Assembly: GCA_029953675.1 (NCBI GenBank)
Contig: JAMWBK010000005.1
Coordinates: 1,054,001 to 1,118,000 of the forward strand
Source of the DNA: Rhodosorus marinus CCMP1338
Taxonomy: Eukaryota; Plantae; Rhodophyta
DNA: 64,000 nucleotides
Direction: 5' to 3'
The notes under the pieces were generated by a model. That model worked only from the letters and a program-made list of their open reading frames with translations, did not search any database and was not told the origin of the DNA. Positions 8,672 through 29,838 of this stretch are shown piece after piece; position 1 is the stretch's first letter; every line of letters starts with the position of its first letter. A program made the translations under genes and the position numbers.

Positions 8672-9918
8672 TCACGAGAGGCTCTTTCGGGCATTCAGAA
8701 TTGACTCTGCAATCGGCAAGTCCTCCGGCGTTGTGATCTTTATGTTCGTATACTCTCCTGAAGAAGGAAGGAAGAACAAACACAACAGGGTACGACTGAG
8801 CGCATTAGAATTAGGCCACCCCTGCAAAACTAGCTCCCATTCCCAAGTTTTAGGACGAACTAGAGGCCCCAGCAATCAGTAGTTCTGGGATTTAGGGCTC
8901 CGAACGCACCCATAGTGAGTTTCACTGGTCTCCCAAGCTGCTCGACAATAGAGACATCGTCCGTGACTTCGAGATCTTGCTCACGGACCAGATCGAAACC
9001 TTCGGTAAGTACTTTTTTCTCCACAACCTGCGGCGTTTGAACCTCCCAAAGACGAGATCTACGAGAAAAAGCACAGGGTTAGACGGGTTCATCCAGTCCA
9101 ACTCTCCTGTCCGGTTTGTTTGCTCACCTCTGAATGGTTCTGAGCACAAAGCTACCGTCTTCACTTTCCTTGACTGTGGCTTTACAAGGCACTCCCAAGA
9201 CAGCTGCTCCATGGGCCTCTGCATCGTTTAGAACCTTGCGAATCTCGTCGGGAGTAACCAGAGGCCGAGCAGCATCGTGAACGCAGATAAGACCAGCGTC
9301 ATTCACAGTGGCCTACCACGAAACAGGACAAGTACGACGATCTGAGCGATTGATCTCAAAAGAAAACCCAGAGTGGACTCTTGATTTACCTTCTGAAGAC
9401 CGTTATAGACAGAATCCTGTCTCTCGTTTCCCGGGCTTGCGAAGTGTAGTTGACGGTCACCGCTTGAGAGATCCGCATAATCTTCGTGGTACGACTCATC
9501 AACAACAAGGACGACCTGATGGAGAAGGACGTTATGTTTGAGTGCATGTTTTCCTGTACGACTGCTCACGCGCACCCTGCGAATCTCGCGTAAGATCGCT
9601 TACCTCCGTCACCTCCGGGAGGGACAGGAAAAGCTCAAGCGAGCGGTGTAGTATGGTCTGTCCATCCAGAACGAGAAACTGCTTCGGCACGTCTGCCTTC
9701 ATCCGCTTTCCTACCCCACCGGCGAGCACAATCGCGCATACCTGCCTCGACACTGTGCCAGTTTCAACCACGTCTGAGCTGGACATGGAAATCCGTGCTG
9801 CTTGTCGCCCACAGGATTTCCTTGACCGAAGAGATGGCCGGCATAGCTCCCTATTTCGATCTAAGGGGGTTACTTTCGATCCTCTGACGTGAATCAAGCA
9901 ACCCTCAACAAAAGCCAT
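8672..9918 (-). CDS. ispD: 2-C-methyl-D-erythritol 4-phosphate cytidylyltransferase, plastid-targeted, 4 introns
   Basis: Motifs AIVLAGGVGKRM, PKQF, RQDSVYNGL, VHDAARP, EVQTPQ, VTDDVS and NIKITTPEDL are joined by GT-AG introns. MAFV transit-peptide start. Confidence 0.95.
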
Positions 9919-10434
9919 TTCCCCTACGCTCTCTCGACCCTCTTCCCCCGTTCGGAATACCTCGCGTAGACAGGGCACACACCTCCCCTATCTCCTCGCT
10001 CTCTATCTCACGTCGGGATCTATTCGCTAATCGAATAAACAGACGATTCTTCTCGATTGATCAATCCTGCTGTTTCCAGGAAGTAACCAGCCGGTGATCT
10101 GCAAGCAGCTTTGTCAATCTGTTTTTTTTTTGTTCCGATTGTGGCTTCTCCGGACCCTTGGGTCAACGGCAAGAGTTGTAACCGGCTCACGGGGACCAAG
10201 GGTCATAGCTATTAGAGTTCTGTCTTGCATGTACGGACGAGTTGCATTCATAATTCCAAACTTGTATTTACTTAGTGCCTCATATGCTAAAGAATACTGC
10301 TGTATCAATACGCAGAAGTGTTGGGGGTTAGTGCTTTCGTGCAACCAGACGGCTTCTTTTTCGACCGGTCGCCATCCTGGCGTGTAGACGGGGTGTCCTC
10401 CAGCTCCCTCGTTCTCCCATTACCGCCGGGCAGC

Positions 10435-12598: not shown

Positions 12599-13773
12599 TC
12601 AGCCATTGAAAAGCTGGTTCTTAATAGTAAGGCTCAAAAGTCCCCTTATCTGCTCATTCGACACTTTTTGCGCCTCAGCCATGACCTGCATCATGTCAGC
12701 TTCATTAGAACTGCTATTTGGGAGCAAGTATCCGATCGTCGCATCTCGACGGTCTCTCTCTATGTGCTTCATTCTCTTGCTCAAGTCGGTGATCTGTCTG
12801 GCCAGCTGAGCCCGATCTTCCAACAAAGGAGACGTGGAGAGCGTGCTCGCCCAGAAACGGTTCCAAACGGCCTCTAGTAATGACGCATCCAGCTTGGACT
12901 TGAAACATTTGATTTCGAGCTTGTAGTACTTGGAATGATGATGCCCGTACTCAGCTATCTTCTCCAACGGAATAACCTGGTGGGAGCTCAGCATTTCCTG
13001 CCTCGGCTGATAGTCCTGTGAGTTAGGAACAAGAGTGACTCAATAACCAGACCCAGAAAAGCGAAAACGGCGAGTTCCAATCTCCGCTGGAACTTTTGTG
13101 AGCTCACTTTCTTGTACGTCCGGAACGCTCCAATATCTACCTTGCCGGAAGACATGGTTCGGATCGGATCAACGACAATAGCCACCCAGGGATCTGAATA
13201 GTCTTGATGTTGCCTCTGGGTATTCACATCAATCCCGCTGAGCCAGCAACCATAGTCGGGGTGGGAATGGTACCAACCTATGGAGTTTTCCTTCCTGTTC
13301 ACCTCCTGACCAGAGCACTGATAGTTGACTCGAAATTCTTCACCGTTGTCGAGAGCCTCCACGCGTACTTCCGTCCCTTCAACAGGAAGCGGAAACGAGT
13401 CCATAACGATGAACGAGTGGGGTTCGAACTTTCCCATCAGCGAACCCATGACCTCAAACCTTCCGCCTGACTTGGCATGCATAACCATCTTGATCAGTGC
13501 CAGAGCAGACACATGCACATACTTGAAATAATTAGGGTCCTTCTTCCAAGGCTGCTTCCTCCTCATGGCCTCCAGCGCTTCGTTGTCGTACTCGAACCAT
13601 TCGTGAGAAGTGTCAACCTTGTTGGCAGTCTCCCAATTCTGTAATGCCCGCTTCGCGTCCATCTCTGAGAAAAACAAACCAAAAACGGACAAAATCCTGA
13701 AAGAGCGGAAAAGCGTCGATGAGTAATGTTGTCTAACTCTCCAGAAGTCTAAACCTTCTCCGCCCCATGCCAT
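12599..13773 (-). CDS. CSN5: COP9 signalosome subunit 5 (JAMM/MPN+ deneddylase)
   Basis: ALIKMVMHAKSGG-FEVMG, PVEGTE, GWYHSHPDYGCWLSGIDV, VDPIRTMSSGKVDIGAFRTY. One clear intron near 13.0-13.1 kb and a probable short first exon (MAWGGE). Confidence 0.9.
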
Positions 13774-14778
13774 CCCCTTGCTAGGCCATTGCGAATTGAG
13801 GGCCAGTACGGTGCTTATTGGTGTGTTTGAGGTAGAGAAAGAGACCAGAAAGCTTCTATTCCAGTCTAAAGATGAAGGAAACGTGCTGATTTCCATACAA
13901 ATCGAACCTTAATCTATCGACAAAGGTTGTGAAGCTACGCTTTTGAAGAGGTTCAAGGTTCATCATGAGCCCCACTCAAAAAAAAAATATCTGTTTGTCC
14001 CCGCAGCTCTCCGTCTACAAGATGGTGCAGCCGAGTGTGATCAAGCCTATCTCCTCTAAGCAGGTTTGCTAATGCTGCCAGAGCAGCTCATTTTGGACGC
14101 AATTTTTGCAGAGGATCTCCCAGCGGGCTCTGTTGTGGTTTGACACGAAAACAAAAAGCCTCAAGAGTCTCTTTCAAACAGGAAGACCAAAAGTCAAACT
14201 ATTGCGAACCAGCCATACTCCCGGGAAAAGACCAAGCAAACATCTTTCAATTCTTCTAGATCTCAAAGGTCGTGAAAACCTGTCTCAAAGGCTAACCCAA
14301 ACCAGTCATCGACTGCGCGACTGTGCCTCCGCTAGATCCATCGACCTTCAAAGCCTTCTTCCCTAGTCTCCCTCGATCACTGATCCTCGATAAGTCCTCA
14401 ACAGACTTACAATAGGCTCAAAATTTCTAAACTTAGATATTGCAACTGAATTAATGAAAATTATTAGACAAATAGTCTTTGATCTGAAACCAATTTATCT
14501 AGTTCTGGGTGCTGAGGATTCCTCTTAGACTAAAAGGAAAATCTCTGGTACTAGTGCCTAATGTTACACTGAATTCTTGATTTCTGAGAGTTTTTATTTG
14601 TCCATGATCAACATGCAGCTTCTTCGTTTTCGGATAGTTAGTTCAGTACTAAAGCATGTTGGCATGGATGGTCGGGGGGGCAACCCTGCAAAGTGGAGTG
14701 TATGTGGAGCAAGGTGACTATGTTTGTTAGACTTGAATGACTTGGTAACGTCCTCTTTGTATTTGTATCCATTGAAAG

Positions 14779-16283: not shown

Positions 16284-18506
16284 TCATCCTTGAACCAGCT
16301 TTGCATTTGCCTGCGCACTTTCAACTTTTTTCATCAAGTCAACGAGCTCGTGGTCCGCAAAGTTGACCAAGAAGTGCGGCAGCAGGTGCTCTTCTTCCTT
16401 TTCGACATGTTCCGTGTCCAAAGCAGTGAAGCGGTATACTTGGAGGAACAGCTCTGTGGCCTTTGCCTCGTTCAAAGTACTAATCAAATCGTGAAGTTGG
16501 GTGAGTCGTCCGCTCTGTTTATAATGGTCAACAGAGTACGCCTCAGCAACTCCGGGCTTGCGTTTCACGAGCTCCGGGAACAGAATAGCATCCGCAATGC
16601 GACAATGCATGGCAAGCGCTTCAGCCAAATTGTAGTACGTAGACTCAAGCACCTGAATCTGCAATCAAAGATACAGTATCAAAAGAGTTAGTCCTAGCAG
16701 CACCAGCAAGGTTCACGAGGCAACTTCACATATGGCAACGTAAGCTCACATTTTCCTCTGTACATTCGCTAACCAAAACCGACGACGCTTCGGAGAAATC
16801 GTTCCGAAGTTGCCGAATATCCGAGCTCAGGCCAACAAAGAAGTCCGCAAACTGACTTTTAACAGCTGAGTCCGCAGTTCCCACGTCCGCTCCCGGTACA
16901 AACGGTTGGATGTCCTGCTTTTCCGCCCGCAAAACATTATCGACCAAGTTGCTGCCCTGTCCACGGCTTTGATCGTTGATCATGCCTCCGTATCCATTTC
17001 GCGGATCCTCCATTCGGAGACTGTCATTTCGGTCTGTCGACCGGTCAGGTTTCGCCTTCGCGGCAAATTCTAATGAGTACAGCTTAATATACAACTCTTG
17101 AAGATCTCCCACATCGTCTGTAGGAATGAACCTTGGAGGAAGCATGCTCGGGTCTTGAATGAATCCTAAGATGTTACTCCGCACGCAACTCAGATGCTCT
17201 GAAATCCATCTTCGCAAAAGAACGTGGAAAGGAGAAACAATCGATCGTTAGCCTATGCTTAGAGAGCGACTTCTTGCTGTGCTCACGAAAGCCTACCTGG
17301 TTGCTTCCGGGGGCCGAGTGTAATCCTGTCGAATGGAAATATGCCAGGCGGCCAGAAAAGTTCCATCATAGCTTCCAATAGGCCCGTTCTTTCTCACATA
17401 GCAGGAGAGACAATTCGGGGTTCGGCACTGCGGAGGGAAGCCACAAGCGCACAGAAAACTCCGAAGCGTAAACTCTCCGCTATCAGGATAGTGCTCTCCG
17501 TCTCGAAGAATCACAACAACGTTGCTGAAACGGACTGCCAACAAAGCAGGATGCCTTGATTTGAACCTAATATTAGGAGCTTGGAAGTATCTCATAAGCC
17601 CTGCCCACGAATTATCAATTGGCTCCTCAACGGTACGGCCGTGATGATCTGAAATCTTCTTCACAAAAACCCTCGTAAATAGCTCCGGTGAGAAAGGGGA
17701 GTGAATTGAAACCTCCGACGCACTTCCCGCTGATTCTGACTTTTTTCTCTTCTTATCTGCATCCTTTCGCGAGTAAACTGAAAAGGCGCTCGAAATGAGC
17801 GACGCTAACACGTATTGATTACCAAGCGAATCTCTTTCTACAATGGAGACCAAGAAGTGGAACCTCTTCCCTCCGTGCGTGTTGCTCGTGCCTACAATTA
17901 CGTAACGGAGCGGAGTGAGAAATCTCTTGCCTTTTTGGAGTGATTCTTGCTTCTGTGCTTACCCATTAGCCTTAGTCTAGAAAACCGGCATTCGCTATCT
18001 ACTATGTGCGACACCGCATATTTTTGATCCCTCTCGGGTACAATGAGACCGACGTCTTCCAACTCGTTCGAATTGCTGGCAATACACACGATCGAGAACC
18101 GTACTTCCAAGTTCTGCCTCCCTTCCTTGTCGTTCACTCGCACGCATACTTCTGGAAGGCGCCATGTCTTGTGCCACCTCCATTCTTGTTTCTCAGCATC
18201 CCACGACAGAGGCTTGTCCAAAGACACAGATACATTCAAACTGCCTGGCCACTCGCTGGGAAGCGTAAGCCTACTGTCATTCGCAAAGCCGCGCACAACT
18301 GACGCTCTGCATCGCTCCCAGGAGAAGTCATGTTTGCGATCGTCAGCAACCACGACGTTATCAGCTTCCCAGGGTAAGTCTTGAGGATCCTGGGCAAATT
18401 TGAGCTCCGCCTTCGCCGGCCCGCCGAAATCCAGCTCACCTCCCCCCTCGCGGATCCCGGACCCGACTGAATCAAACCCTCTGTAGCCTTTCGTTAATCC
18501 ATCCAT
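16284..18506 (-). CDS. Putative transcription factor: Ig-fold (p53/CudA/NDT80-like) DNA-binding domain + Cys cluster + C-terminal hemerythrin (HHE) domain
   Basis: Four ORFs join in frame through three phase-compatible GT-AG introns, giving FSRLRLMGTSNTHGGKRFHFLVSIVE...SAFSVYSRK followed by an NLS-like KKRKK. The C-terminus HCRIADAILFPEL...YSVDH...EHVEKEEEHLLP follows the HHE pattern. Confidence 0.8.
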
Positions 18507-20744
18507 GGGCTCAGCAGTATTAATTAACCAAACCAAACTACGTAGAGACAATCGACCCTCTGTACGCCAAAAAACCCCAAACCGATTCACGACCACGGTA
18601 CTGACAGCGATAACCTCCAACTTGCTCCCATCCTTTGCTGACCCTCTGCTCCACCTTCACACAAAAGTACACTATCCGTTCCAGACAACCCCAGAACGCC
18701 AACCCCCTTCCAAAAAAACCAACCGTCCACGTCCTGACCCACTCCTCAACTCTTCCTCCCAGTTCCCAAGGACAAGCCCGTGCAACAGCTCCTCACAAAC
18801 AAGTAGTCAAACCTAAATCCGCTTTCAAAAGCAAAAACACCCGAAAAAAGAATTTTCTTCTTTTGGTCCACGCTCCCTTCTCTGCTACCCTGCCACCTGT
18901 GAACAATGACCACCTCCCCCCCCCTCCTGAACGACGGTCAATGTCCCTCCCTCCTAACCAATGACCAATCTTACCCGTCCCCCTTCCCCCCCCCTTGCTT
19001 CTGAACGATACCCAATCTCCCGAATCTTGAACCCTCAAATCTTCACCTCCAATACACTCAACTCGCAAAGCCCCTCAACCCCGCCCTCTCCTCATCCTCC
19101 CAACCTCGTAAAACTCATGAAGGTCCCCAACTTAAAAAGCCTCATCTTTCGCCAAAAGCTTAAAAAAAAAAAACTTACCTCGTCCTTATCAAAATCAACA
19201 ACCAAACAGCAAAAGCGAATCCACATGCGAGCCACCGTACTTCCGACCATCATCCCCTCTTCCAATCTCCAAATTTCTCGATATTATAATAAAACAGAAA
19301 AATAAAACAGTATTTGTTATTCCCGGAAATCTTACATTCCCTCCCCCTTCGTGTCATTCGTTAATATTTCCCTCGTAAAAACTGAAAAACGTAAGAAGGA
19401 GCGCTCGAAACTGTCATACATCCAGAAAAGTGACAACGCCATCCCCCCCAAAAAGAGTTAAAAAGGGGATTTCGTTTCCCATCAGCACCGAGTTGATAGA
19501 TAAAGCTCCGTTTTATAGTTATTTTTATAGTAATAAAAACAGTCCTTGGGATTCTTTTTTTTGGATTAGATTCATGGCTTGTGGCGAGATAGAAGGGGGG
19601 GGGGAGGGCGTGGAGATGTGTACAATAGAAATTGAAACTGGAGAGTCAGTCATTTTTAATATATGATTGGATTTTCTGGTGCTTTTCTTTTCTTTCATAG
19701 GTGAGTTTTCTAAAATAGATTGATAAAGAGAATTCCGCATGAATCAATGGTCGAATGAGATTTGTATTACGGATAAAATATTAAGTAGTTCCGGAAACAT
19801 GTATAAAAAAGTAACGAATTTTATGAGCGAGCAGGGGGGTTTGCAATTCGCGAGTTCACATCCATTTGGGCGGCGCTTCCCCCCTCTCCCCCCCAATCCC
19901 GATGAGTTTCTGAAGATTATTTGCCCCTAGTACTCACTCCTCCCCTCCCTTCCCCTTTTCCTTTCACACTACTCATGGCCGGGTTTCGTTGGAAAAATAA
20001 TAATAAAATCTAATTTTGGAGGGGATGGATATCCTGTTCTGGTGCTTCGTACTTTTTCGTACTCCTTTTTTTTTTTGTAGGGTTGGAATGGTTCTCGCCC
20101 CTCCCCCCCCAAACAAGTGAATAATAATCAATTTTTTCCAGAAAGGATCTGGGTCCAGGGTTGTGTAGAATAATAGTACGTTCGTAGGTACTTCTCTTTT
20201 TTAATCAAAAGTTGAATCCACATTTCGAACATGCATTTTGGTAATGTTAGGGACTAATTTGTACTATACACACACTATGTACTAATATGTGTGGGTGTGT
20301 ACGAAGGAGCATATTGAGCGTTGAGTATCGTGGGTCGAGGGGTACGAGATCAGAGCTCCGACCCGCATGCTCAAGGTGCTTGGAGTACTGAACAAGAATT
20401 TGAACGGCGTGGTTTGCGATACACACCGTGGGTTCACCTCGAAATACATCAATCAAAGGTATTCCAGTAGCACGAACGAAGGGTAGTACGAAGCTATAGT
20501 TGGATCGCCCGAAGTACATAGTAAGCGGGTCGCGGTGATCAGCCCTTCGCGGCTACCCCCTACCTCTATCAGCACCGCCTCATCGCCAGTTTTGAGGTTG
20601 CTAGTGCTGCATTTTTAGGATGCTTTTGAGAAAAGGAAGACGTCTGGGCGAGCACGAAGACGTTGCTAATGTCAGCCGGAAACTTCCATTCCTGGAGCGC
20701 TCGGTATTAGGTGAACAGAGCAGCCGATCGGTGTTACCACTTCC

Positions 20745-21837
20745 TTAGATCTTTTTACTTTCGAGCAGAGATCTGATTTTAGTTTTCAAGAGGTCGGAGT
20801 CCTCGCTCTCATCGGATAGCCTTCCAGATATTATGCCTGGCGTTTTCGCTTTCAAGTCTTCCTCAATAAAATGCATATGCTTGAAATTCAGCAACGACTC
20901 TATCGCCGCGTATCGCAACGTCCAATCCTCGCAGTCAACCAGCAGTTGTAGTGTGGCATATGCATCGTTGGCGTCCTCCTTGTCGTCGTAGTTCAGGCTG
21001 GCCAGGACGCCACATGCAGTCCTACGGCATCTCGGAATTAAATGATCTACAGCACAATCCTTCATGATGAGAAAGACGCTCGGGTCGGCGAAATAGCCCA
21101 AAAGTCTCAAGCCTTCTCCCTGAGCGGAGTAGTTCAATCCTTTCAAAAGCTGGTGGGAACAAACAAGGCGGAGCCAGCTGAGATGAGTACTGAAATCATT
21201 TCGAAGAAGGTTTATCGGAATGCAACCACGGGCCACGGCTCTAGGTTTCCAAGGGCTTGCAAACTCTTACACTGAGAATTGGAGAGATAAGACTGGCGTC
21301 CATGACCTCCTCCAGCGCCCGAGATGCCGCGTTCACGTGGTGCATAGCTGGCAAGGTCAGGCAATCCACAAGAACTACCTTGAGCTCCTCGTAGTCGGCT
21401 CTATGCGCGAGCACCTCGTCAACAGCCCGCTCATATTCCTCAATCGTGCCGGCACCGTCCTTAATCGTGTGAACACTGTTCTGCAAAGAAATCGGAAGGT
21501 TGGACACGTCCACTAACCCGATTCAACAAGACACCAGTTCAGTCCTAGGAAACCTCAACGAGGGAGCGATCTGTATCGGCCCGAGCTTTTGCGACTCAAC
21601 AAAGCAGTAGAGGTCGTAAAGCCGAGGAACAGCCCCTGAGTGTGACAACGTACCCTCATACTTTAGACCTCCAAAACGAGCTGTCCAGCTCCTAGCACCA
21701 GAAAACTTTACGCTTGGTTTTTTGGTGCACAATCGCGAAGGCCCCGGGAACCTCCCCAGGGAACACCCGCTGGCTGAAAAACCAAATCCCAACCAGTTTC
21801 TCGACCCATCTGCCCAAACTGAGTCTAAGCTGTTCAT
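20745..21837 (-). CDS. cpcF: CpcF-like E/F-type phycobiliprotein lyase subunit (HEAT repeats), plastid-targeted, 2 introns
   Basis: Spliced product contains LLKGLNYSAQGEGLRLLGYFADP, RCRRTACGVL and CEDWTLRYAAIESL, which parallel CpcF NYGARAY-IRALA-I-DP, VRRAAAKGL and W--RYAA. Ser/Gly/Arg-rich N-terminal extension. Start could be 21912. Confidence 0.7.
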
Positions 21838-22874: not shown

Positions 22875-23929
22875 ATGGGTGAGCGGAAGGTCTTGAACAA
22901 GTACTACCCGCCCGACTTTGACGGGACGAAACTTGTTCGAAATAAGAGGCCCCGGGATCAGTTGGAGCTGATCAGATTTATGCTTCCCGTTACTGTGAGA
23001 TGCAACAATTGCGGCGAGTACATGTACGCGGGAAAGAAATTCAACGTGAAGAAGGAGACCTTGCAGAATGAGGTAAAGACATCTCCTATTTCGCTTGTCT
23101 CTAATTTCGTTTTCTTTAGTCTTGGAATAAGTTTCATGGACGCGTTTACTGAAAGAATTTCATGCGTTCTCGCAGGATTATTTGGGATTGAAGATTTTTA
23201 GATTCTATGTGAAATGTGTGAGTTGTTCCTCGCAGTTCACCATCAAGACTGACCCCAAGAATGCGGACTACATTGCTGAGGCGGGGGCAACGAGAAATTA
23301 TGAGCCCTGGCGGCAGCAGGAACAAGGTATGTACTTACCGAGGTGGCCACTCGCACATGTGACTTTCATAGTTCTAATCTAAGCGTGTTGATATCTTTTT
23401 CACAACTGTAGCCGAGGATGATGTCAAGAAAGCTCTCGACGAAGAGGAAATGGACACGATGGCTGCATTGGAGAACAGAACTCTTGACGCAAAAGAAGAG
23501 ATGGAGATTCAGGATGCTCTAGATCAGTTGCGCCATCTCCGCGCCCAGCAAGGCCACCTCAGCTTTGACCAGCTTTTACGAATCCAAGAGCGCCGATTTA
23601 TGAATACGAGCAGAATTGAGGATGCACGAAAGGAAAAGGCTGAGCTTGAAGACGAGAAGGTTGCCAAAGAAGTATTCCAGAAACGAAGAAATATTGTGAA
23701 ACGGCTCGAAGATCCCTCTGAAGAAGCTGAAAATGTGATGGGCAATGAGCCAGAACCCAAAATTCGTCATACAGCTTCGGAAAATCCCCCCCCGCCGCAG
23801 AAGCCCAAACTAGGGGGGCTTGGAGGCCTGAATATTAAGATCAGCACGTCCAAGAAACCGAGACCTGCAACAGAGAGCAAGGTTGCGCTAGCCAGTCTCG
23901 CGGCTTATCCAGACAGCGAGGACGAGTAG
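22875..23929 (+). CDS. YJU2: Splicing factor YJU2/CCDC94/Cwc16, 2 introns
   Basis: [79 protein letters not shown]. Confidence 0.95.
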
Positions 23930-26455: not shown

Positions 26456-27811
26456 TCACTTTGCGATTGCCTCAGTTTCAGTGCGCTTATCCTTCTCAGA
26501 CTGGAATAGGCAGATCGTTGCAGTGATCATGTTCAACAGGGGAAAGGCGAAGGGTGCGTTCGGCATGTAGGGAGCGGCCCCGTCGTGTGTGGAAAACACT
26601 CCAAACACCAAAGACATCAGCAGCGACCCAAATCCAGTTTGCAAAGTGCTCATTGCGGACAGGGAACCTTGCAAAGATCCCTGTTCTGAAGTTGGTACCT
26701 GCCTGGCTATGATAGCCCGCAAAGTCGGAATCGCTATCCACCCAAACGAGCCGACGAAAAGAGACGCGTAGGCATGCCAAGACTTCGTCATGAAGGTCAT
26801 CACGAGAAGGTATCCAAGCTCCGATATGAACCCAAGTTTCATCGTCGGATACTCTCCAAAGGCCTTAATCGCAAACCGCGTGAGCAAACCCTGGTTTATA
26901 ATTGCCACGATTCCAGCAAACGATAAATAGCGACCAATGTCGGCCGCCTCCCAACTGAGCCTTTCGTGGAAATATAGGTAGGCAATGCCGTGCCAAACCG
27001 TGGTGAAGTTAATCAAGAACTGAGTGGCAACAAGCGACGTCAGATATTTGTCTCGCTTGAAGAGCCGAGTGAAGTTAATAACATCAAGATTGATTGCTCT
27101 CTTGTGTGGATTCTTTAAGGTCTCCGGCATAAACCATATACCGAAAGCCGCTAGTCCGAAAAGGCCAACGCTCGCCCAGAGCGCCGTTTGTTCGTTGAAA
27201 TTGGAGACGATCAATCCGCCGACCATTGGACCCAGCGCGAAGCTCGCGCCCCCAACTACTCCCAAAACCCCAAAGAACACTGGCTCATTCCCAGTCCCTA
27301 CAACAATATCAGCCACACACGCGTTGGCTGTAGTTGGAAAGGCGGATCCGACGCTGGACATGTACTTGGAGAGCACATACATGGGCAGAGTTCTGAAACT
27401 TGCCAGGAGAGCAATTTCCATCGCAAACCCTGCGACTCCGAACAGGAGCACCGGTTTCCGTCCCACACGATCAGACAGCGCTCCAACGTACGGGAGCAAA
27501 ACAAGCTCAAGAGGCATTGTCGCAAAACTGATAATTCCCGAAGCATAAGCAGCTTTTGAGGTGCTGCCGTTCATGATCCTCAACAAAAGAGAGGGCAGAA
27601 CCGGTATCAATATAGAGATAGCAAACGTCACCAAGAACAGAAGAGCCATCACGAATGCAAATTTTCGAACGTCCAGCTCCTGCGCCTCAACTCGTGTTTT
27701 CTCCTCATCATCGCTGAACGCTGTCCGCTCCCCACTGCTCGATCCATACGAACTCTCTCCAGCAAGCGACGTCAACGTCATGTCCTCAGACACCTGTTCC
27801 GTCTCCATCAT
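26456..27811 (-). CDS. MFS transporter, TetA/DHA1 (MFSD14-like) family, intronless
   Basis: About 12 hydrophobic segments, motif A GALSDRVGRKPVLL, motif C-like GGASFALGPMVGG, and EQGSLQGSLS. Confidence 0.9.
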   Translation of the reverse strand: MMETEQVSEDMTLTSLAGESSYGSSSGERTAFSDDEEKTRVEAQELDVRKFAFVMALLFLVTFAISILIPVLPSLLLRIMNGSTSKAAYASGIISFATMPLELVLLPYVGALSDRVGRKPVLLFGVAGFAMEIALLASFRTLPMYVLSKYMSSVGSAFPTTANACVADIVVGTGNEPVFFGVLGVVGGASFALGPMVGGLIVSNFNEQTALWASVGLFGLAAFGIWFMPETLKNPHKRAINLDVINFTRLFKRDKYLTSLVATQFLINFTTVWHGIAYLYFHERLSWEAADIGRYLSFAGIVAIINQGLLTRFAIKAFGEYPTMKLGFISELGYLLVMTFMTKSWHAYASLFVGSFGWIAIPTLRAIIARQVPTSEQGSLQGSLSAMSTLQTGFGSLLMSLVFGVFSTHDGAAPYMPNAPFAFPLLNMITATICLFQSEKDKRTETEAIAK

Positions 27812-29838
27812 TACCAGAGAAAACCGCAACCAATCCCTCTTCTCAACCAGCCATCACCAGAAACCGAATCACAGCAAACGCTCACCAATCACCCACAAGC
27901 GCAGTTCTCTCAAAACATCCAAAAAAACTCGCCTAGCCAACACAACCCACAGGCCAACTATGCTGTAAATACAGCCCTTGCCAAACCCACCCCGAAGCCC
28001 CTCGCCAGCACAAACAGCATGTGCCCCACTTGGCCCCCCTCCCCACTTCTAACACCCAAAGCCGCACCAGGTGCCAATCTCCTTTTATACAACCCCTGGT
28101 TTGTGTCTTCAGTCTTCGAACGACGTAAAACTCTGGAAATTGGGGGGAGTACTAGTCCCCCGTCATCAAATGAAGTCAAACTCACTGCTCTCCTCACCCC
28201 TCACTGGCAACCCCCGTCATTCAATGACCTATGACGTAAAATAAAATCGATCGAAATTCTTTCTTATCACACTGTTTTAACTAACACCCTAAACTTCTTA
28301 AATAAAACATCCATAGACAAATTCTTGATTCCTAAAATATTTCGCAACAAATATTCCCGTGAGAAAATATATCCTTGAGGGCGGATTTCTCGGTTCCCCT
28401 TTCTTTTTTTTGGAAATCAAGGATACACACCCTTCACACACACAAGGACAACACCCCCCCGCACCCCTTTTCTCTTCCCCCAATCAATTCTTGTCCACAA
28501 TTTCGGGGTTCGGTTGATCAACGGTCTCTCCTCTTGAGACGCGTTTGAGATTGAATATGTGAAAAGTGCTTTTGCAAACAAAAACGAAGGAAAAGTTTTT
28601 GTCTTCAGAAGAAGTTCTCATTGGCTTTTTTTCATGTTTGCTATGAGCTTCAGACTTTGAGTGATTGGTTGATTGGTTTATGTATTATAGAATAAAATAA
28701 ATAGAACGTGCAATTTGGTTTCTGGTATTTGAGGCCAATTATTGAAATGGAGAAAATTAATGAGGAAAAGGGATTGTATGTTTTGTAATCATGAATACCG
28801 TAATTATTATGGCACATATACTGATATGAGCATTTCATATTGGCTAATGTCAATGACACTTGCACGTTCATTTGTTGAACTTAATGTCTGAATTATATTA
28901 ATTTGTGAATGGAAGATCGCGGAAGGGGATTGTTGTCCCTTTTCAACGGCAAGTCTGGATACTGGGATGTGACGGGGATGGCCTAAAAGCTTCCAAATAT
29001 TAAGTGTTTTTAGCAGCAGGGGGGGTCTGCTTATTTTCATTGTTGTTGGAAAACGATTCTTGAAGCTTCAAAAACATGTATAAACTATATTTGCAAAGTA
29101 TCCCAACCGCTGGGCAACGTTTCCGGTGTGGTAGTGGTGGGGGAAGGGGGAGGGGGGAAGGGAATAGAGGAACAGTCTCATGTGAAAAAGAGGGAATTTG
29201 TTGGTGAAATGACAGCAATCGTCTGTAGATATTGATTGCCGACCTTGCCCACAGCGTGAGGGGTATATAGGTGGCAGGGCTTCGCTCTGCAGAAGCGAGT
29301 AAAAGCATAACGCTCCGTGGGCTGATTGCACGTAGAGGACATTTCCGAGCTCCTACAGGACGGCACACATAGTCAAGAAGGTCAGGTCCGCGCACACACG
29401 AGCGTCCCGTGTACCCCAATACCTCAAAAAGTTCCCAAGTTGCGAAAGCCACAGAGCTGGTGGAGGCTCTGCTGGGTGTATATACGTTTTGGTGTTGATT
29501 TCTGTACATTTCCACGCAGACTGCTTCCAGAAACGTCAGATGTCACGATGTGCTGGAGCGCACCCTCAACCCTGAAAAGCCTCGCCATGAAACCATCTAG
29601 AATAATCAGGTGAAATGGCCAATGCCATTGTTCGCACAGACTCACGCGGAGACGAAAATAAGCCCCAGGTGGTCGTCCAGTGCTAGTTATTTCGTACGTT
29701 TTTACGCTCGTTAGCTAATTTAATGTAGTAGCAAGTTAGAATTACGCGAGGGCCACAGAGAGCACTCGTCATGGTGTAGCAGACTGGATACAGGGGTGGG
29801 ACATAGCGTCATCGCGACGGGCGAGCCCTGCAGATCCC

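Follow-up and report, generated by a model that had tools for sequence, protein, structure and literature searches.

We describe a gene of the red alga Rhodosorus marinus CCMP1338 that encodes, in one 657-residue polypeptide, a beta-sandwich of the p53-like (Ndt80/MYRF/Runt) type with a basic tail, an alpha/beta domain that matches no known fold, and a C-terminal hemerythrin-like four-helix domain. The gene lies on the minus strand at 18506-16284 of a 64,000-nucleotide stretch of genomic DNA (the window; assembly GCA_029953675.1, contig JAMWBK010000005.1, positions 1,054,001 to 1,118,000), and all coordinates below are positions in this window. The family to which the protein belongs is a plausible direct iron- or oxygen-sensing transcription factor, whereas the window gene is probably its iron-blind variant, having lost two of the six iron ligands of the hemerythrin motif. 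For this reading as a whole (three-part protein, Fe/O2-responsive family, iron-insensitive window copy) we estimate a probability of roughly 0.6.

Removal of three GT-AG introns from the four exons (Table 1) gives a single open reading frame (ORF), a spliced coding sequence of 1974 nt that is translated into 657 amino acids with no internal stops. The splice junctions are exactly those quoted in an earlier interpretation made from the DNA letters only (the sequence-only reading), and the strings it cited, CRFSRLRLMGTSNTHGGKRFHFLVSIVE (spanning junction 1) and HCRIADAILFPELVKRKPGVAEAYSVDH...HVEKEE, are present in the product. The protein is 100% identical to KAJ8904764.1, the hypothetical protein NDN08_001280 of R. 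marinus. A related strain (~92% identity) supplied a transcript contig of 2375 nt (L001) that aligned in four blocks, with breaks at the three predicted introns; one block end, at 17962, falls at the exon 1 border. The segment RLRLMG/TSNTHGGKRFH, which runs across the intron 1 junction (slash), is uninterrupted in all homologs, and an ORF from an MMETSP transcript (P0049) also has 657 residues, with 27 residue differences and no insertions or deletions. The gene is real and expressed, not a chance pattern of open reading frames.

One could still argue that the fusion is an artefact of annotation or assembly and that the hemerythrin exon constitutes a separate gene. Indeed, in the MMETSP isoform Transcript_20039, from which intron 3 is not spliced out, there are separate ORFs of 553 and 160 residues; the former (P0050) runs into intron 3 after ...SECTEEN, ends inside the intron and is without hemerythrin helices 2-4. 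However, spliced transcripts in two other datasets encode the full 656/657-residue protein, and 45 red-algal proteins carry this fusion, some of them being intron-free transcript ORFs. The hemerythrin domain is itself interrupted by intron 3, since exon 3 encodes helix 1 and exon 4 helices 2-4, and there is therefore no separate hemerythrin gene. Three observations rule out a separate gene or mis-splicing: a transcript spans the junctions, the product equals the annotated protein, and helix 1 is encoded before intron 3. We regard the artefact explanation as refuted. The intron-3-retaining transcript (P0050, P0242) may represent either RNA that had not been spliced or a regulated form that lacks the hemerythrin domain.

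The N-terminal tail encoded by exon 1 is weakly conserved and precedes the beta-sandwich. The AlphaFold2 (AF2) model that contains the sandwich has a mean predicted local distance difference test (pLDDT) score of 83.6, with values mostly between 86 and 94 at residues ~59-225. A Foldseek search of the PDB returned the DNA-binding domain (DBD) of MYRF as the best match (Ndt80-type, 5h5p; E 2.5e-8, probability 1.00, template modelling (TM) score 0.56 on the target), followed by CP2c/LSF (8y7v, E 5e-5), p53 cores (E 9e-5) and then RelA, p73, Grhl2 and NFAT. The match probability was at least 0.99 for 8y7v, 7eeu, 4qo1, 2xwc, 9bdw and 5mr7, and the top 12 matches (E <= 0.001) are mostly p53-like DNA-binding domains. 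STAT1 appeared only at rank 41 (E 1.4e-2). In the model, the domain is an s-type Ig beta-sandwich that can be superposed on members of the p53-like superfamily, which agrees with the Ig fold that the sequence-only reading had proposed for the N-terminal region.

The sandwich carries the conserved motifs WRWHKTW, FSRLRL, GTSNTHGGKRFH and FSVYSRK. Nine residues (W111, K113, P118, T183, S184, G189, S215, V220 and R223) are conserved in 20-23 of 23 diverse family members, and K113, T183, S184, G189 and R223 are kept in 20-22 of them. The only PDB sequence matched by a profile of the module formed by the sandwich and the middle domain was the Runt domain of RUNX1, at an E value (0.59) that is not significant alone; the alignment pairs F-x-x-L-R-F / TS..G-K-F-H / V-D-S-R-K-basic with Runt ARFNDLRFVGRSGRGKSFT...ITVDGPREPRRHRQK. 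Membership in the NDT80_PhoG (PF05224), P53, Runt, STAT_bind, RHD or CP2 families was rejected, since none of these Pfam models was matched when 19 family members were scanned with hmmscan, even at E <= 10. A STAT-type factor was also discarded: there is no SH2 or STAT match in Pfam, and the domain behind the sandwich matches no solved structure, SH2 included. We conclude that the sandwich is a new sequence family inside the p53-like DNA-binding fold and would probably bind DNA.

Directly after the invariant SRK follows a basic segment, KKRKKSESAGSASEVS (residues ~227-242), that is predicted to be disordered; the AF2 model has pLDDT values below 50 in this linker (model residues 173-188). SRK and the basic run are conserved among the homologs, and the KKRKK stretch resembles a classical nuclear localisation signal (NLS), a role that we consider putative. 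The sequence-only reading described a two-part protein and missed the domain of about 185 residues (~248-432) that comes next. Modelled alone, this middle domain is compact (pLDDT 91.8, predicted TM score 0.86). No other part of the protein is as well conserved, and besides the sandwich it is the sole folded part common to distant relatives; it carries the motifs PFxP, IDNSWxGLxRYFQAPNIRFKSRHP (IRFKxRHP in the family form) and RFSN, as well as two residues, K292 and F303, that are invariant, ciliates included. Attempts to relate it to a known fold were unsuccessful. Foldseek found no match in the PDB (best E 0.7, probability 0.03, TM < 0.2) or in BFVD (best E 0.46), and hmmscan of the 19 members found no Pfam family, so that a STAT linker, an SH2 domain, a zinc finger or any other solved fold was rejected. 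Contact of its basic APNIRxKxRHP loop with nucleic acid or a ligand is speculation. A cysteine cluster, C328-x-C330-x5-C336-x4-C341-x2-C344 (residues 328-344, window ~17316-17368, minus strand), may form a zinc-binding or redox site in some family members; the insertion with C341 and C344 is found only in members of the Rhodosorus, Bangiopsis, Purpureofilum and Timspurckia type and is absent from Galdieria and the ciliates. A variable linker (residues 433-495) connects the middle domain to the hemerythrin domain. Compared with the related strain (dS ~0.3), the ratio of non-synonymous to synonymous substitution rates (dN/dS) is 0.016 for the sandwich, 0.028 for the middle domain, 0.27 for the inter-domain linker and 0.088 for the hemerythrin domain.

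Pfam recognizes PF01814 at residues 529-628 with a borderline score (25.0 bits against a cut-off of 25.3; E 2.8e-5). It is the only Pfam domain found in the 657-residue protein, in line with the expectation that no E3-ligase domain accompanies it. Relatives exceed the cut-off (P0055 reaches 36.5 bits), and most members have a precomputed PF01814 match. The single sequence gave no match when compared with the PDB sequences; a profile of the family's C-terminal region matched the FBXL5 hemerythrin domain (3v5x, E 5e-5) end to end over profile positions 24-170, with the Fe-S repair proteins YtfE and ScdA as weaker matches. These results support the C-terminal hemerythrin-like HHE domain of the sequence-only reading and lend no specific support to its description as 'BRUTUS-like'. 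The closest solved structure is that of FBXL5, and a profile search of named databases, whose word index limits its reach, yielded nothing but family fragments and small hemerythrin proteins of ~214 residues, with no BRUTUS or HRZ protein.

The ligand motif of hemerythrins is H-HxxxE-H-HxxxE (PMC12022348). The ligand columns of the family map onto FBXL5, the helix 1 His corresponding to His15, the helix 2 HxxxE to His57/Glu61 and the helix 4 HxxxE to His126/Glu130, and we compared them in a table of the query with 47 retrieved sequences. Ser508 stands at the first ligand position and Ala555 at that of the bridging Glu in both the window protein and its ortholog (96% identity); the same holds for the MMETSP strain, and the codons AGC (508) and GCG (555) are identical in the L001 transcript. 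In each of the 43 other red-algal members, the first position is occupied by His and the helix 2 position by Glu. Helix 1 of the window protein contains no His whatsoever. H551, H578, H617 and E621 (four of the six ligands) are kept, together with the family-specific H624; judged by its sequence, the protein does not possess the full ligand set. The natural Ala555 equals an engineered E->A change at the bridging Glu that abolishes iron binding in BTSL2 (PMC12022348), and a second ligand is lost as well; no canonical diiron centre is therefore predicted. The window copy is thus probably devoid of such a centre and hence probably not itself an iron/oxygen sensor, contrary to the iron/oxygen/NO sensing proposed for it. 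The proposal's own alignment (HCRIAD against HCNAED of BRUTUS) contained the Glu->Ala change, which had been overlooked. Of the suggestion that a sensor is wired directly to a DNA-binding domain, the fusion to a DNA-binding-type fold stands, but sensing by the window copy does not. The hemerythrin domain is not decaying, and its dN/dS value shows that it is under purifying selection. A second R. marinus paralog, NDN08_003561 (P0032), which is 34% identical and located elsewhere in the genome, keeps all ligands.

The complete three-part architecture was found in 45 proteins, and all those with a species name are red algal. Named carriers are Rhodosorus (two paralogs), Bangiopsis, Purpureofilum, Timspurckia, Porphyridium purpureum (FVE85_8437), Compsopogon, several Galdieria species and Porphyra umbilicalis, so that the hemerythrin fusion is present in at least five red-algal classes. 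The architecture marks a conserved red-algal family and is not peculiar to this locus. The module of sandwich and middle domain is distributed more widely. Its profile, searched against 1.84 billion cluster representatives, matched 533 representatives at E <= 0.001 and 275 at E <= 1e-10, with named examples outside the red algae in Paramecium and Tetrahymena (ciliates) and Chrysochromulina (haptophyte). Among 63 long relatives, Pfam found a hemerythrin domain in six, FIST_N plus FIST_C in one and thioredoxin in one, and no Pfam domain in the rest. The module is fused to the sensor domain FIST_N/FIST_C in a protist protein of 1079 residues and to thioredoxin elsewhere (P0046, P0062). By these sequence comparisons the module appears as an independent evolutionary unit that is joined to different C-terminal domains, which suggests that it accepts them interchangeably. 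In Galdieria yellowstonensis KAK4525522.1 (P0230, 817 residues) the protein is merged with a Nudix/8-oxo-dGTP diphosphatase; its cluster mates have 629 residues, and the merger probably reflects a gene model that took in a neighbouring gene rather than a real architecture.

Database names of the relatives are limited to 'hypothetical', 'hemerythrin-like domain-containing' or 'zinc finger-like', and the Tetrahymena relative bears the automated label 'zinc finger transcription factor sma protein, putative'. Pfam gave no support for the 'zinc finger' labels on the Galdieria and Tetrahymena relatives. A second search of the named database, with a diverse module profile, retrieved no further named or characterised relatives. 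We found no description of the architecture or the family in the literature (subscription journals lay outside the coverage), as the sequence-only reading had supposed, and the combination of p53-like fold, orphan domain and hemerythrin appears to be undescribed.

Of the known systems, MYRF and the Ndt80-type factors are closest at the N-terminus. They share the s-type Ig beta-sandwich and, with the p53-like superfamily, a layout of F-x-x-L-x-F, a (T/R)S...G-K/R-F loop and a last strand that ends in a basic tail. However, NDT80_PhoG and other sequence models do not match the window family, and its sandwich is followed by the orphan alpha/beta domain instead of the ICA domain of MYRF, the linker and SH2 domains of STAT or the IPT domain of Rel. 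The range of the module (red algae, ciliates, haptophytes) is also unlike that of its MYRF/Ndt80-type relatives. CudA-like factors, whose resemblance the sequence-only reading had suggested, act in the nucleus, are specific to protists and have a DNA-binding core of the STAT-like kind. The literature confines CudA-like genes to Amoebozoa (PMC8808424), and no amoebozoan protein is among the named relatives of the module; we therefore rejected a CudA relationship, a separation made by description, the core sequences not having been compared.

At the C-terminus, the hemerythrin domain of FBXL5 (3v5x, 3u9j) is the closest solved relative of the family. Both are single hemerythrin-like domains on a regulatory protein, but FBXL5 combines its domain with an F-box and leucine-rich repeats and acts by ubiquitination, where the window family has a DNA-binding-type module; moreover, the equivalents of FBXL5 His15 and Glu61 are missing from the window copy. 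BRUTUS, HRZ and BTSL2 likewise have hemerythrin-like iron-sensing domains within the Archaeplastida. They contain three intertwined hemerythrin subdomains plus CHY and RING zinc fingers, whereas Pfam detects one hemerythrin domain and none of those fingers in the window protein. BTSL2 offers a natural precedent: its H2 subdomain is a hemerythrin-like bundle in which the motif is incomplete and a diiron centre is lacking (PMC12022348). Bacterial hemerythrin sensors of oxygen or redox state (Bhr-DGC and DcrH type; PMC9388753) follow the same one-component logic, a hemerythrin sensor fused to an output, but their outputs are prokaryotic (diguanylate cyclase, chemoreceptor) and none is p53-like; the homology shown is that of the hemerythrin fold.

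For the family, we propose that the sandwich binds DNA via the conserved loops WHK, TSNxxGGxRFH and SRK and the basic tail, and that the hemerythrin domain holds a diiron centre. Occupancy or redox state of this centre would alter the folding, stability, activity or intramolecular contacts of the factor, in analogy to FBXL5, which is stabilised by iron (as summarised in PMC12022348). The family would then be a one-protein Fe/O2-responsive transcription factor. The window copy would be a nuclear but iron-insensitive variant, either constitutive or a candidate partner of the ligand-complete paralog NDN08_003561, and its helix bundle may have been retained for a structural or interaction role. 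A more specific version, in which a diiron hemerythrin gates the p53-like module, the module represents a large unrecognised transcription factor family with swappable C-termini, and the window copy is an iron-blind modulator or partner of NDN08_003561, is tentative, and we consider it possible rather than likely.

Several points weigh against this proposal. We infer DNA binding and nuclear localisation for every family member; no Pfam DNA-binding model matches any of the 19 members scanned; and the Foldseek TM scores of the sandwich are moderate (0.36-0.56 on the target), with antibodies, arrestin/VPS26 and Asf1 among the lower ranks. The sandwich might accordingly serve another purpose than DNA binding, in which case the family would consist of cytoplasmic or protein-binding factors and no transcription factors. 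Against this, most of the 12 Foldseek matches at E <= 0.001 are p53-like DNA-binding domains, the invariant basic and polar residues lie in loops that match the DNA-contact loops of Runt, and a conserved NLS-like KKRKK tail follows the last strand. We consider a family without DNA-binding function improbable.

A different objection concerns the metal site. Asp556 and Asp510, with His551, His578, His617, Glu621 and His624, could form a mononuclear or unusual site, and the strong purifying selection on the hemerythrin domain is compatible with some retained sensing. The window copy might then still be a metal or redox sensor in which H551, H578, H617, E621 and H624, perhaps with D556 or D510, bind one iron, another metal or an atypical diiron centre. 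The retention of four of the six canonical ligands and of the family-conserved His624 favours such a site, as does the variation of ligand sets among hemerythrin-like proteins, moss sequences without one ligand being on record (PMC12022348). However, the missing Glu is the residue that bridges both irons and whose replacement in BTSL2 abolishes iron binding, the second ligand is gone from a helix 1 devoid of His, and the H2 subdomain of BTSL2, with its incomplete motif, is iron-free (PMC12022348). Residual sensing thus seems unlikely to us, though less so than a sandwich that does not bind DNA, and we favour an iron-insensitive window copy within an Fe/O2-responsive family.

The known iron sensing by eukaryotic hemerythrin domains (FBXL5, BRUTUS/HRZ) is indirect and operates through ubiquitin ligases. 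If our proposal is true, a hemerythrin domain joined directly to a DNA-binding fold would provide a shorter route, similar to a bacterial one-component system, and would be a testable candidate regulator for the red algae, a group in which little is understood of iron and oxygen regulation. The module appears to be a large transcription factor-like family (the 533 representatives) that is absent from Pfam and from Pfam-based transcription factor censuses of red algae and ciliates, and the domain that it conserves best is the one for which no fold match is known. The H->S and E->A changes that occur naturally in this gene, together with the intact paralog in the same genome, form a built-in control pair for biochemical work. 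The interest of the system is mainly at the level of the family, the sensing claim being weakened for the window locus itself.

The features of the gene and its surroundings are collected in Table 1.

Table 1. Positions of the gene, its predicted domains and the neighbouring ORFs in the 64,000-nt window.
Feature	Position	Strand	Remarks
Exon 1	17963..18506	-	ATG 18506-18504; residues 1-181; weakly conserved N-terminal tail and most of the beta-sandwich
Intron 1	17892..17962	-	71 nt; GTAAGC...TTGTAG
Exon 2	17297..17891	-	residues 182-379; end of beta-sandwich, basic linker, most of middle domain
Intron 2	17210..17296	-	87 nt; GTAGGC...GCGAAG
Exon 3	16750..17209	-	residues 380-533; end of middle domain, variable linker, hemerythrin helix 1
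Intron 3	16659..16749	-	91 nt; GTGAGC...GACTAAC...TTGCAG; CTAAC is a branch-like element
Exon 4	16284..16658	-	residues 534-657 and TGA stop 16286-16284; hemerythrin helices 2-4
p53-like beta-sandwich, putative DNA-binding domain	17761..18332 (includes intron 1)	-	residues ~59-225; AF2 model and Foldseek
Basic tail/linker SRKDADKKRKKSESAGSASE	17710..17769	-	residues 223-242; predicted disordered; classical-NLS-like
Orphan alpha/beta middle domain	17053..17694 (includes intron 2)	-	residues ~248-432 (~185 residues); AF2 model
Hemerythrin-like HHE domain	16323..16863 (includes intron 3)	-	residues ~496-645; Pfam and family profile against PDB
Ser508, codon AGC	16825..16827	-	first ligand His position of H-HxxxE-H-HxxxE (FBXL5 His15)
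Ala555, codon GCG	16593..16595	-	bridging Glu position of first HxxxE (FBXL5 Glu61)
IspD, COP9 signalosome subunit 5/JAB1 (two ORFs)	9532-9978; 12599-13896	-	ORF matches; JAB1 probably intron-split
HEAT-repeat protein	20745-21236	-	ORF match
Saf4/Yju2 splicing factor	23450-23929	+	ORF match
MFS transporter	26456-27829	-	ORF match

The neighbours are unrelated housekeeping genes in an ordinary nuclear context and give no functional clue. No second copy of the module was found within the window. Opposite the hemerythrin exon, the plus strand contains an unsupported ORF of 133 residues (16290-16691), which most likely arose by chance. The region immediately upstream of the gene, at 18500-19500, is strongly C-rich on the plus strand (G-rich on the strand of the gene), with GC skews of -0.54 and -0.46 and poly-C runs around 18910-19000; the transcript alignment of the related strain reaches 18560. 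The C-rich stretch probably reflects the composition of a promoter or 5'-untranslated region.

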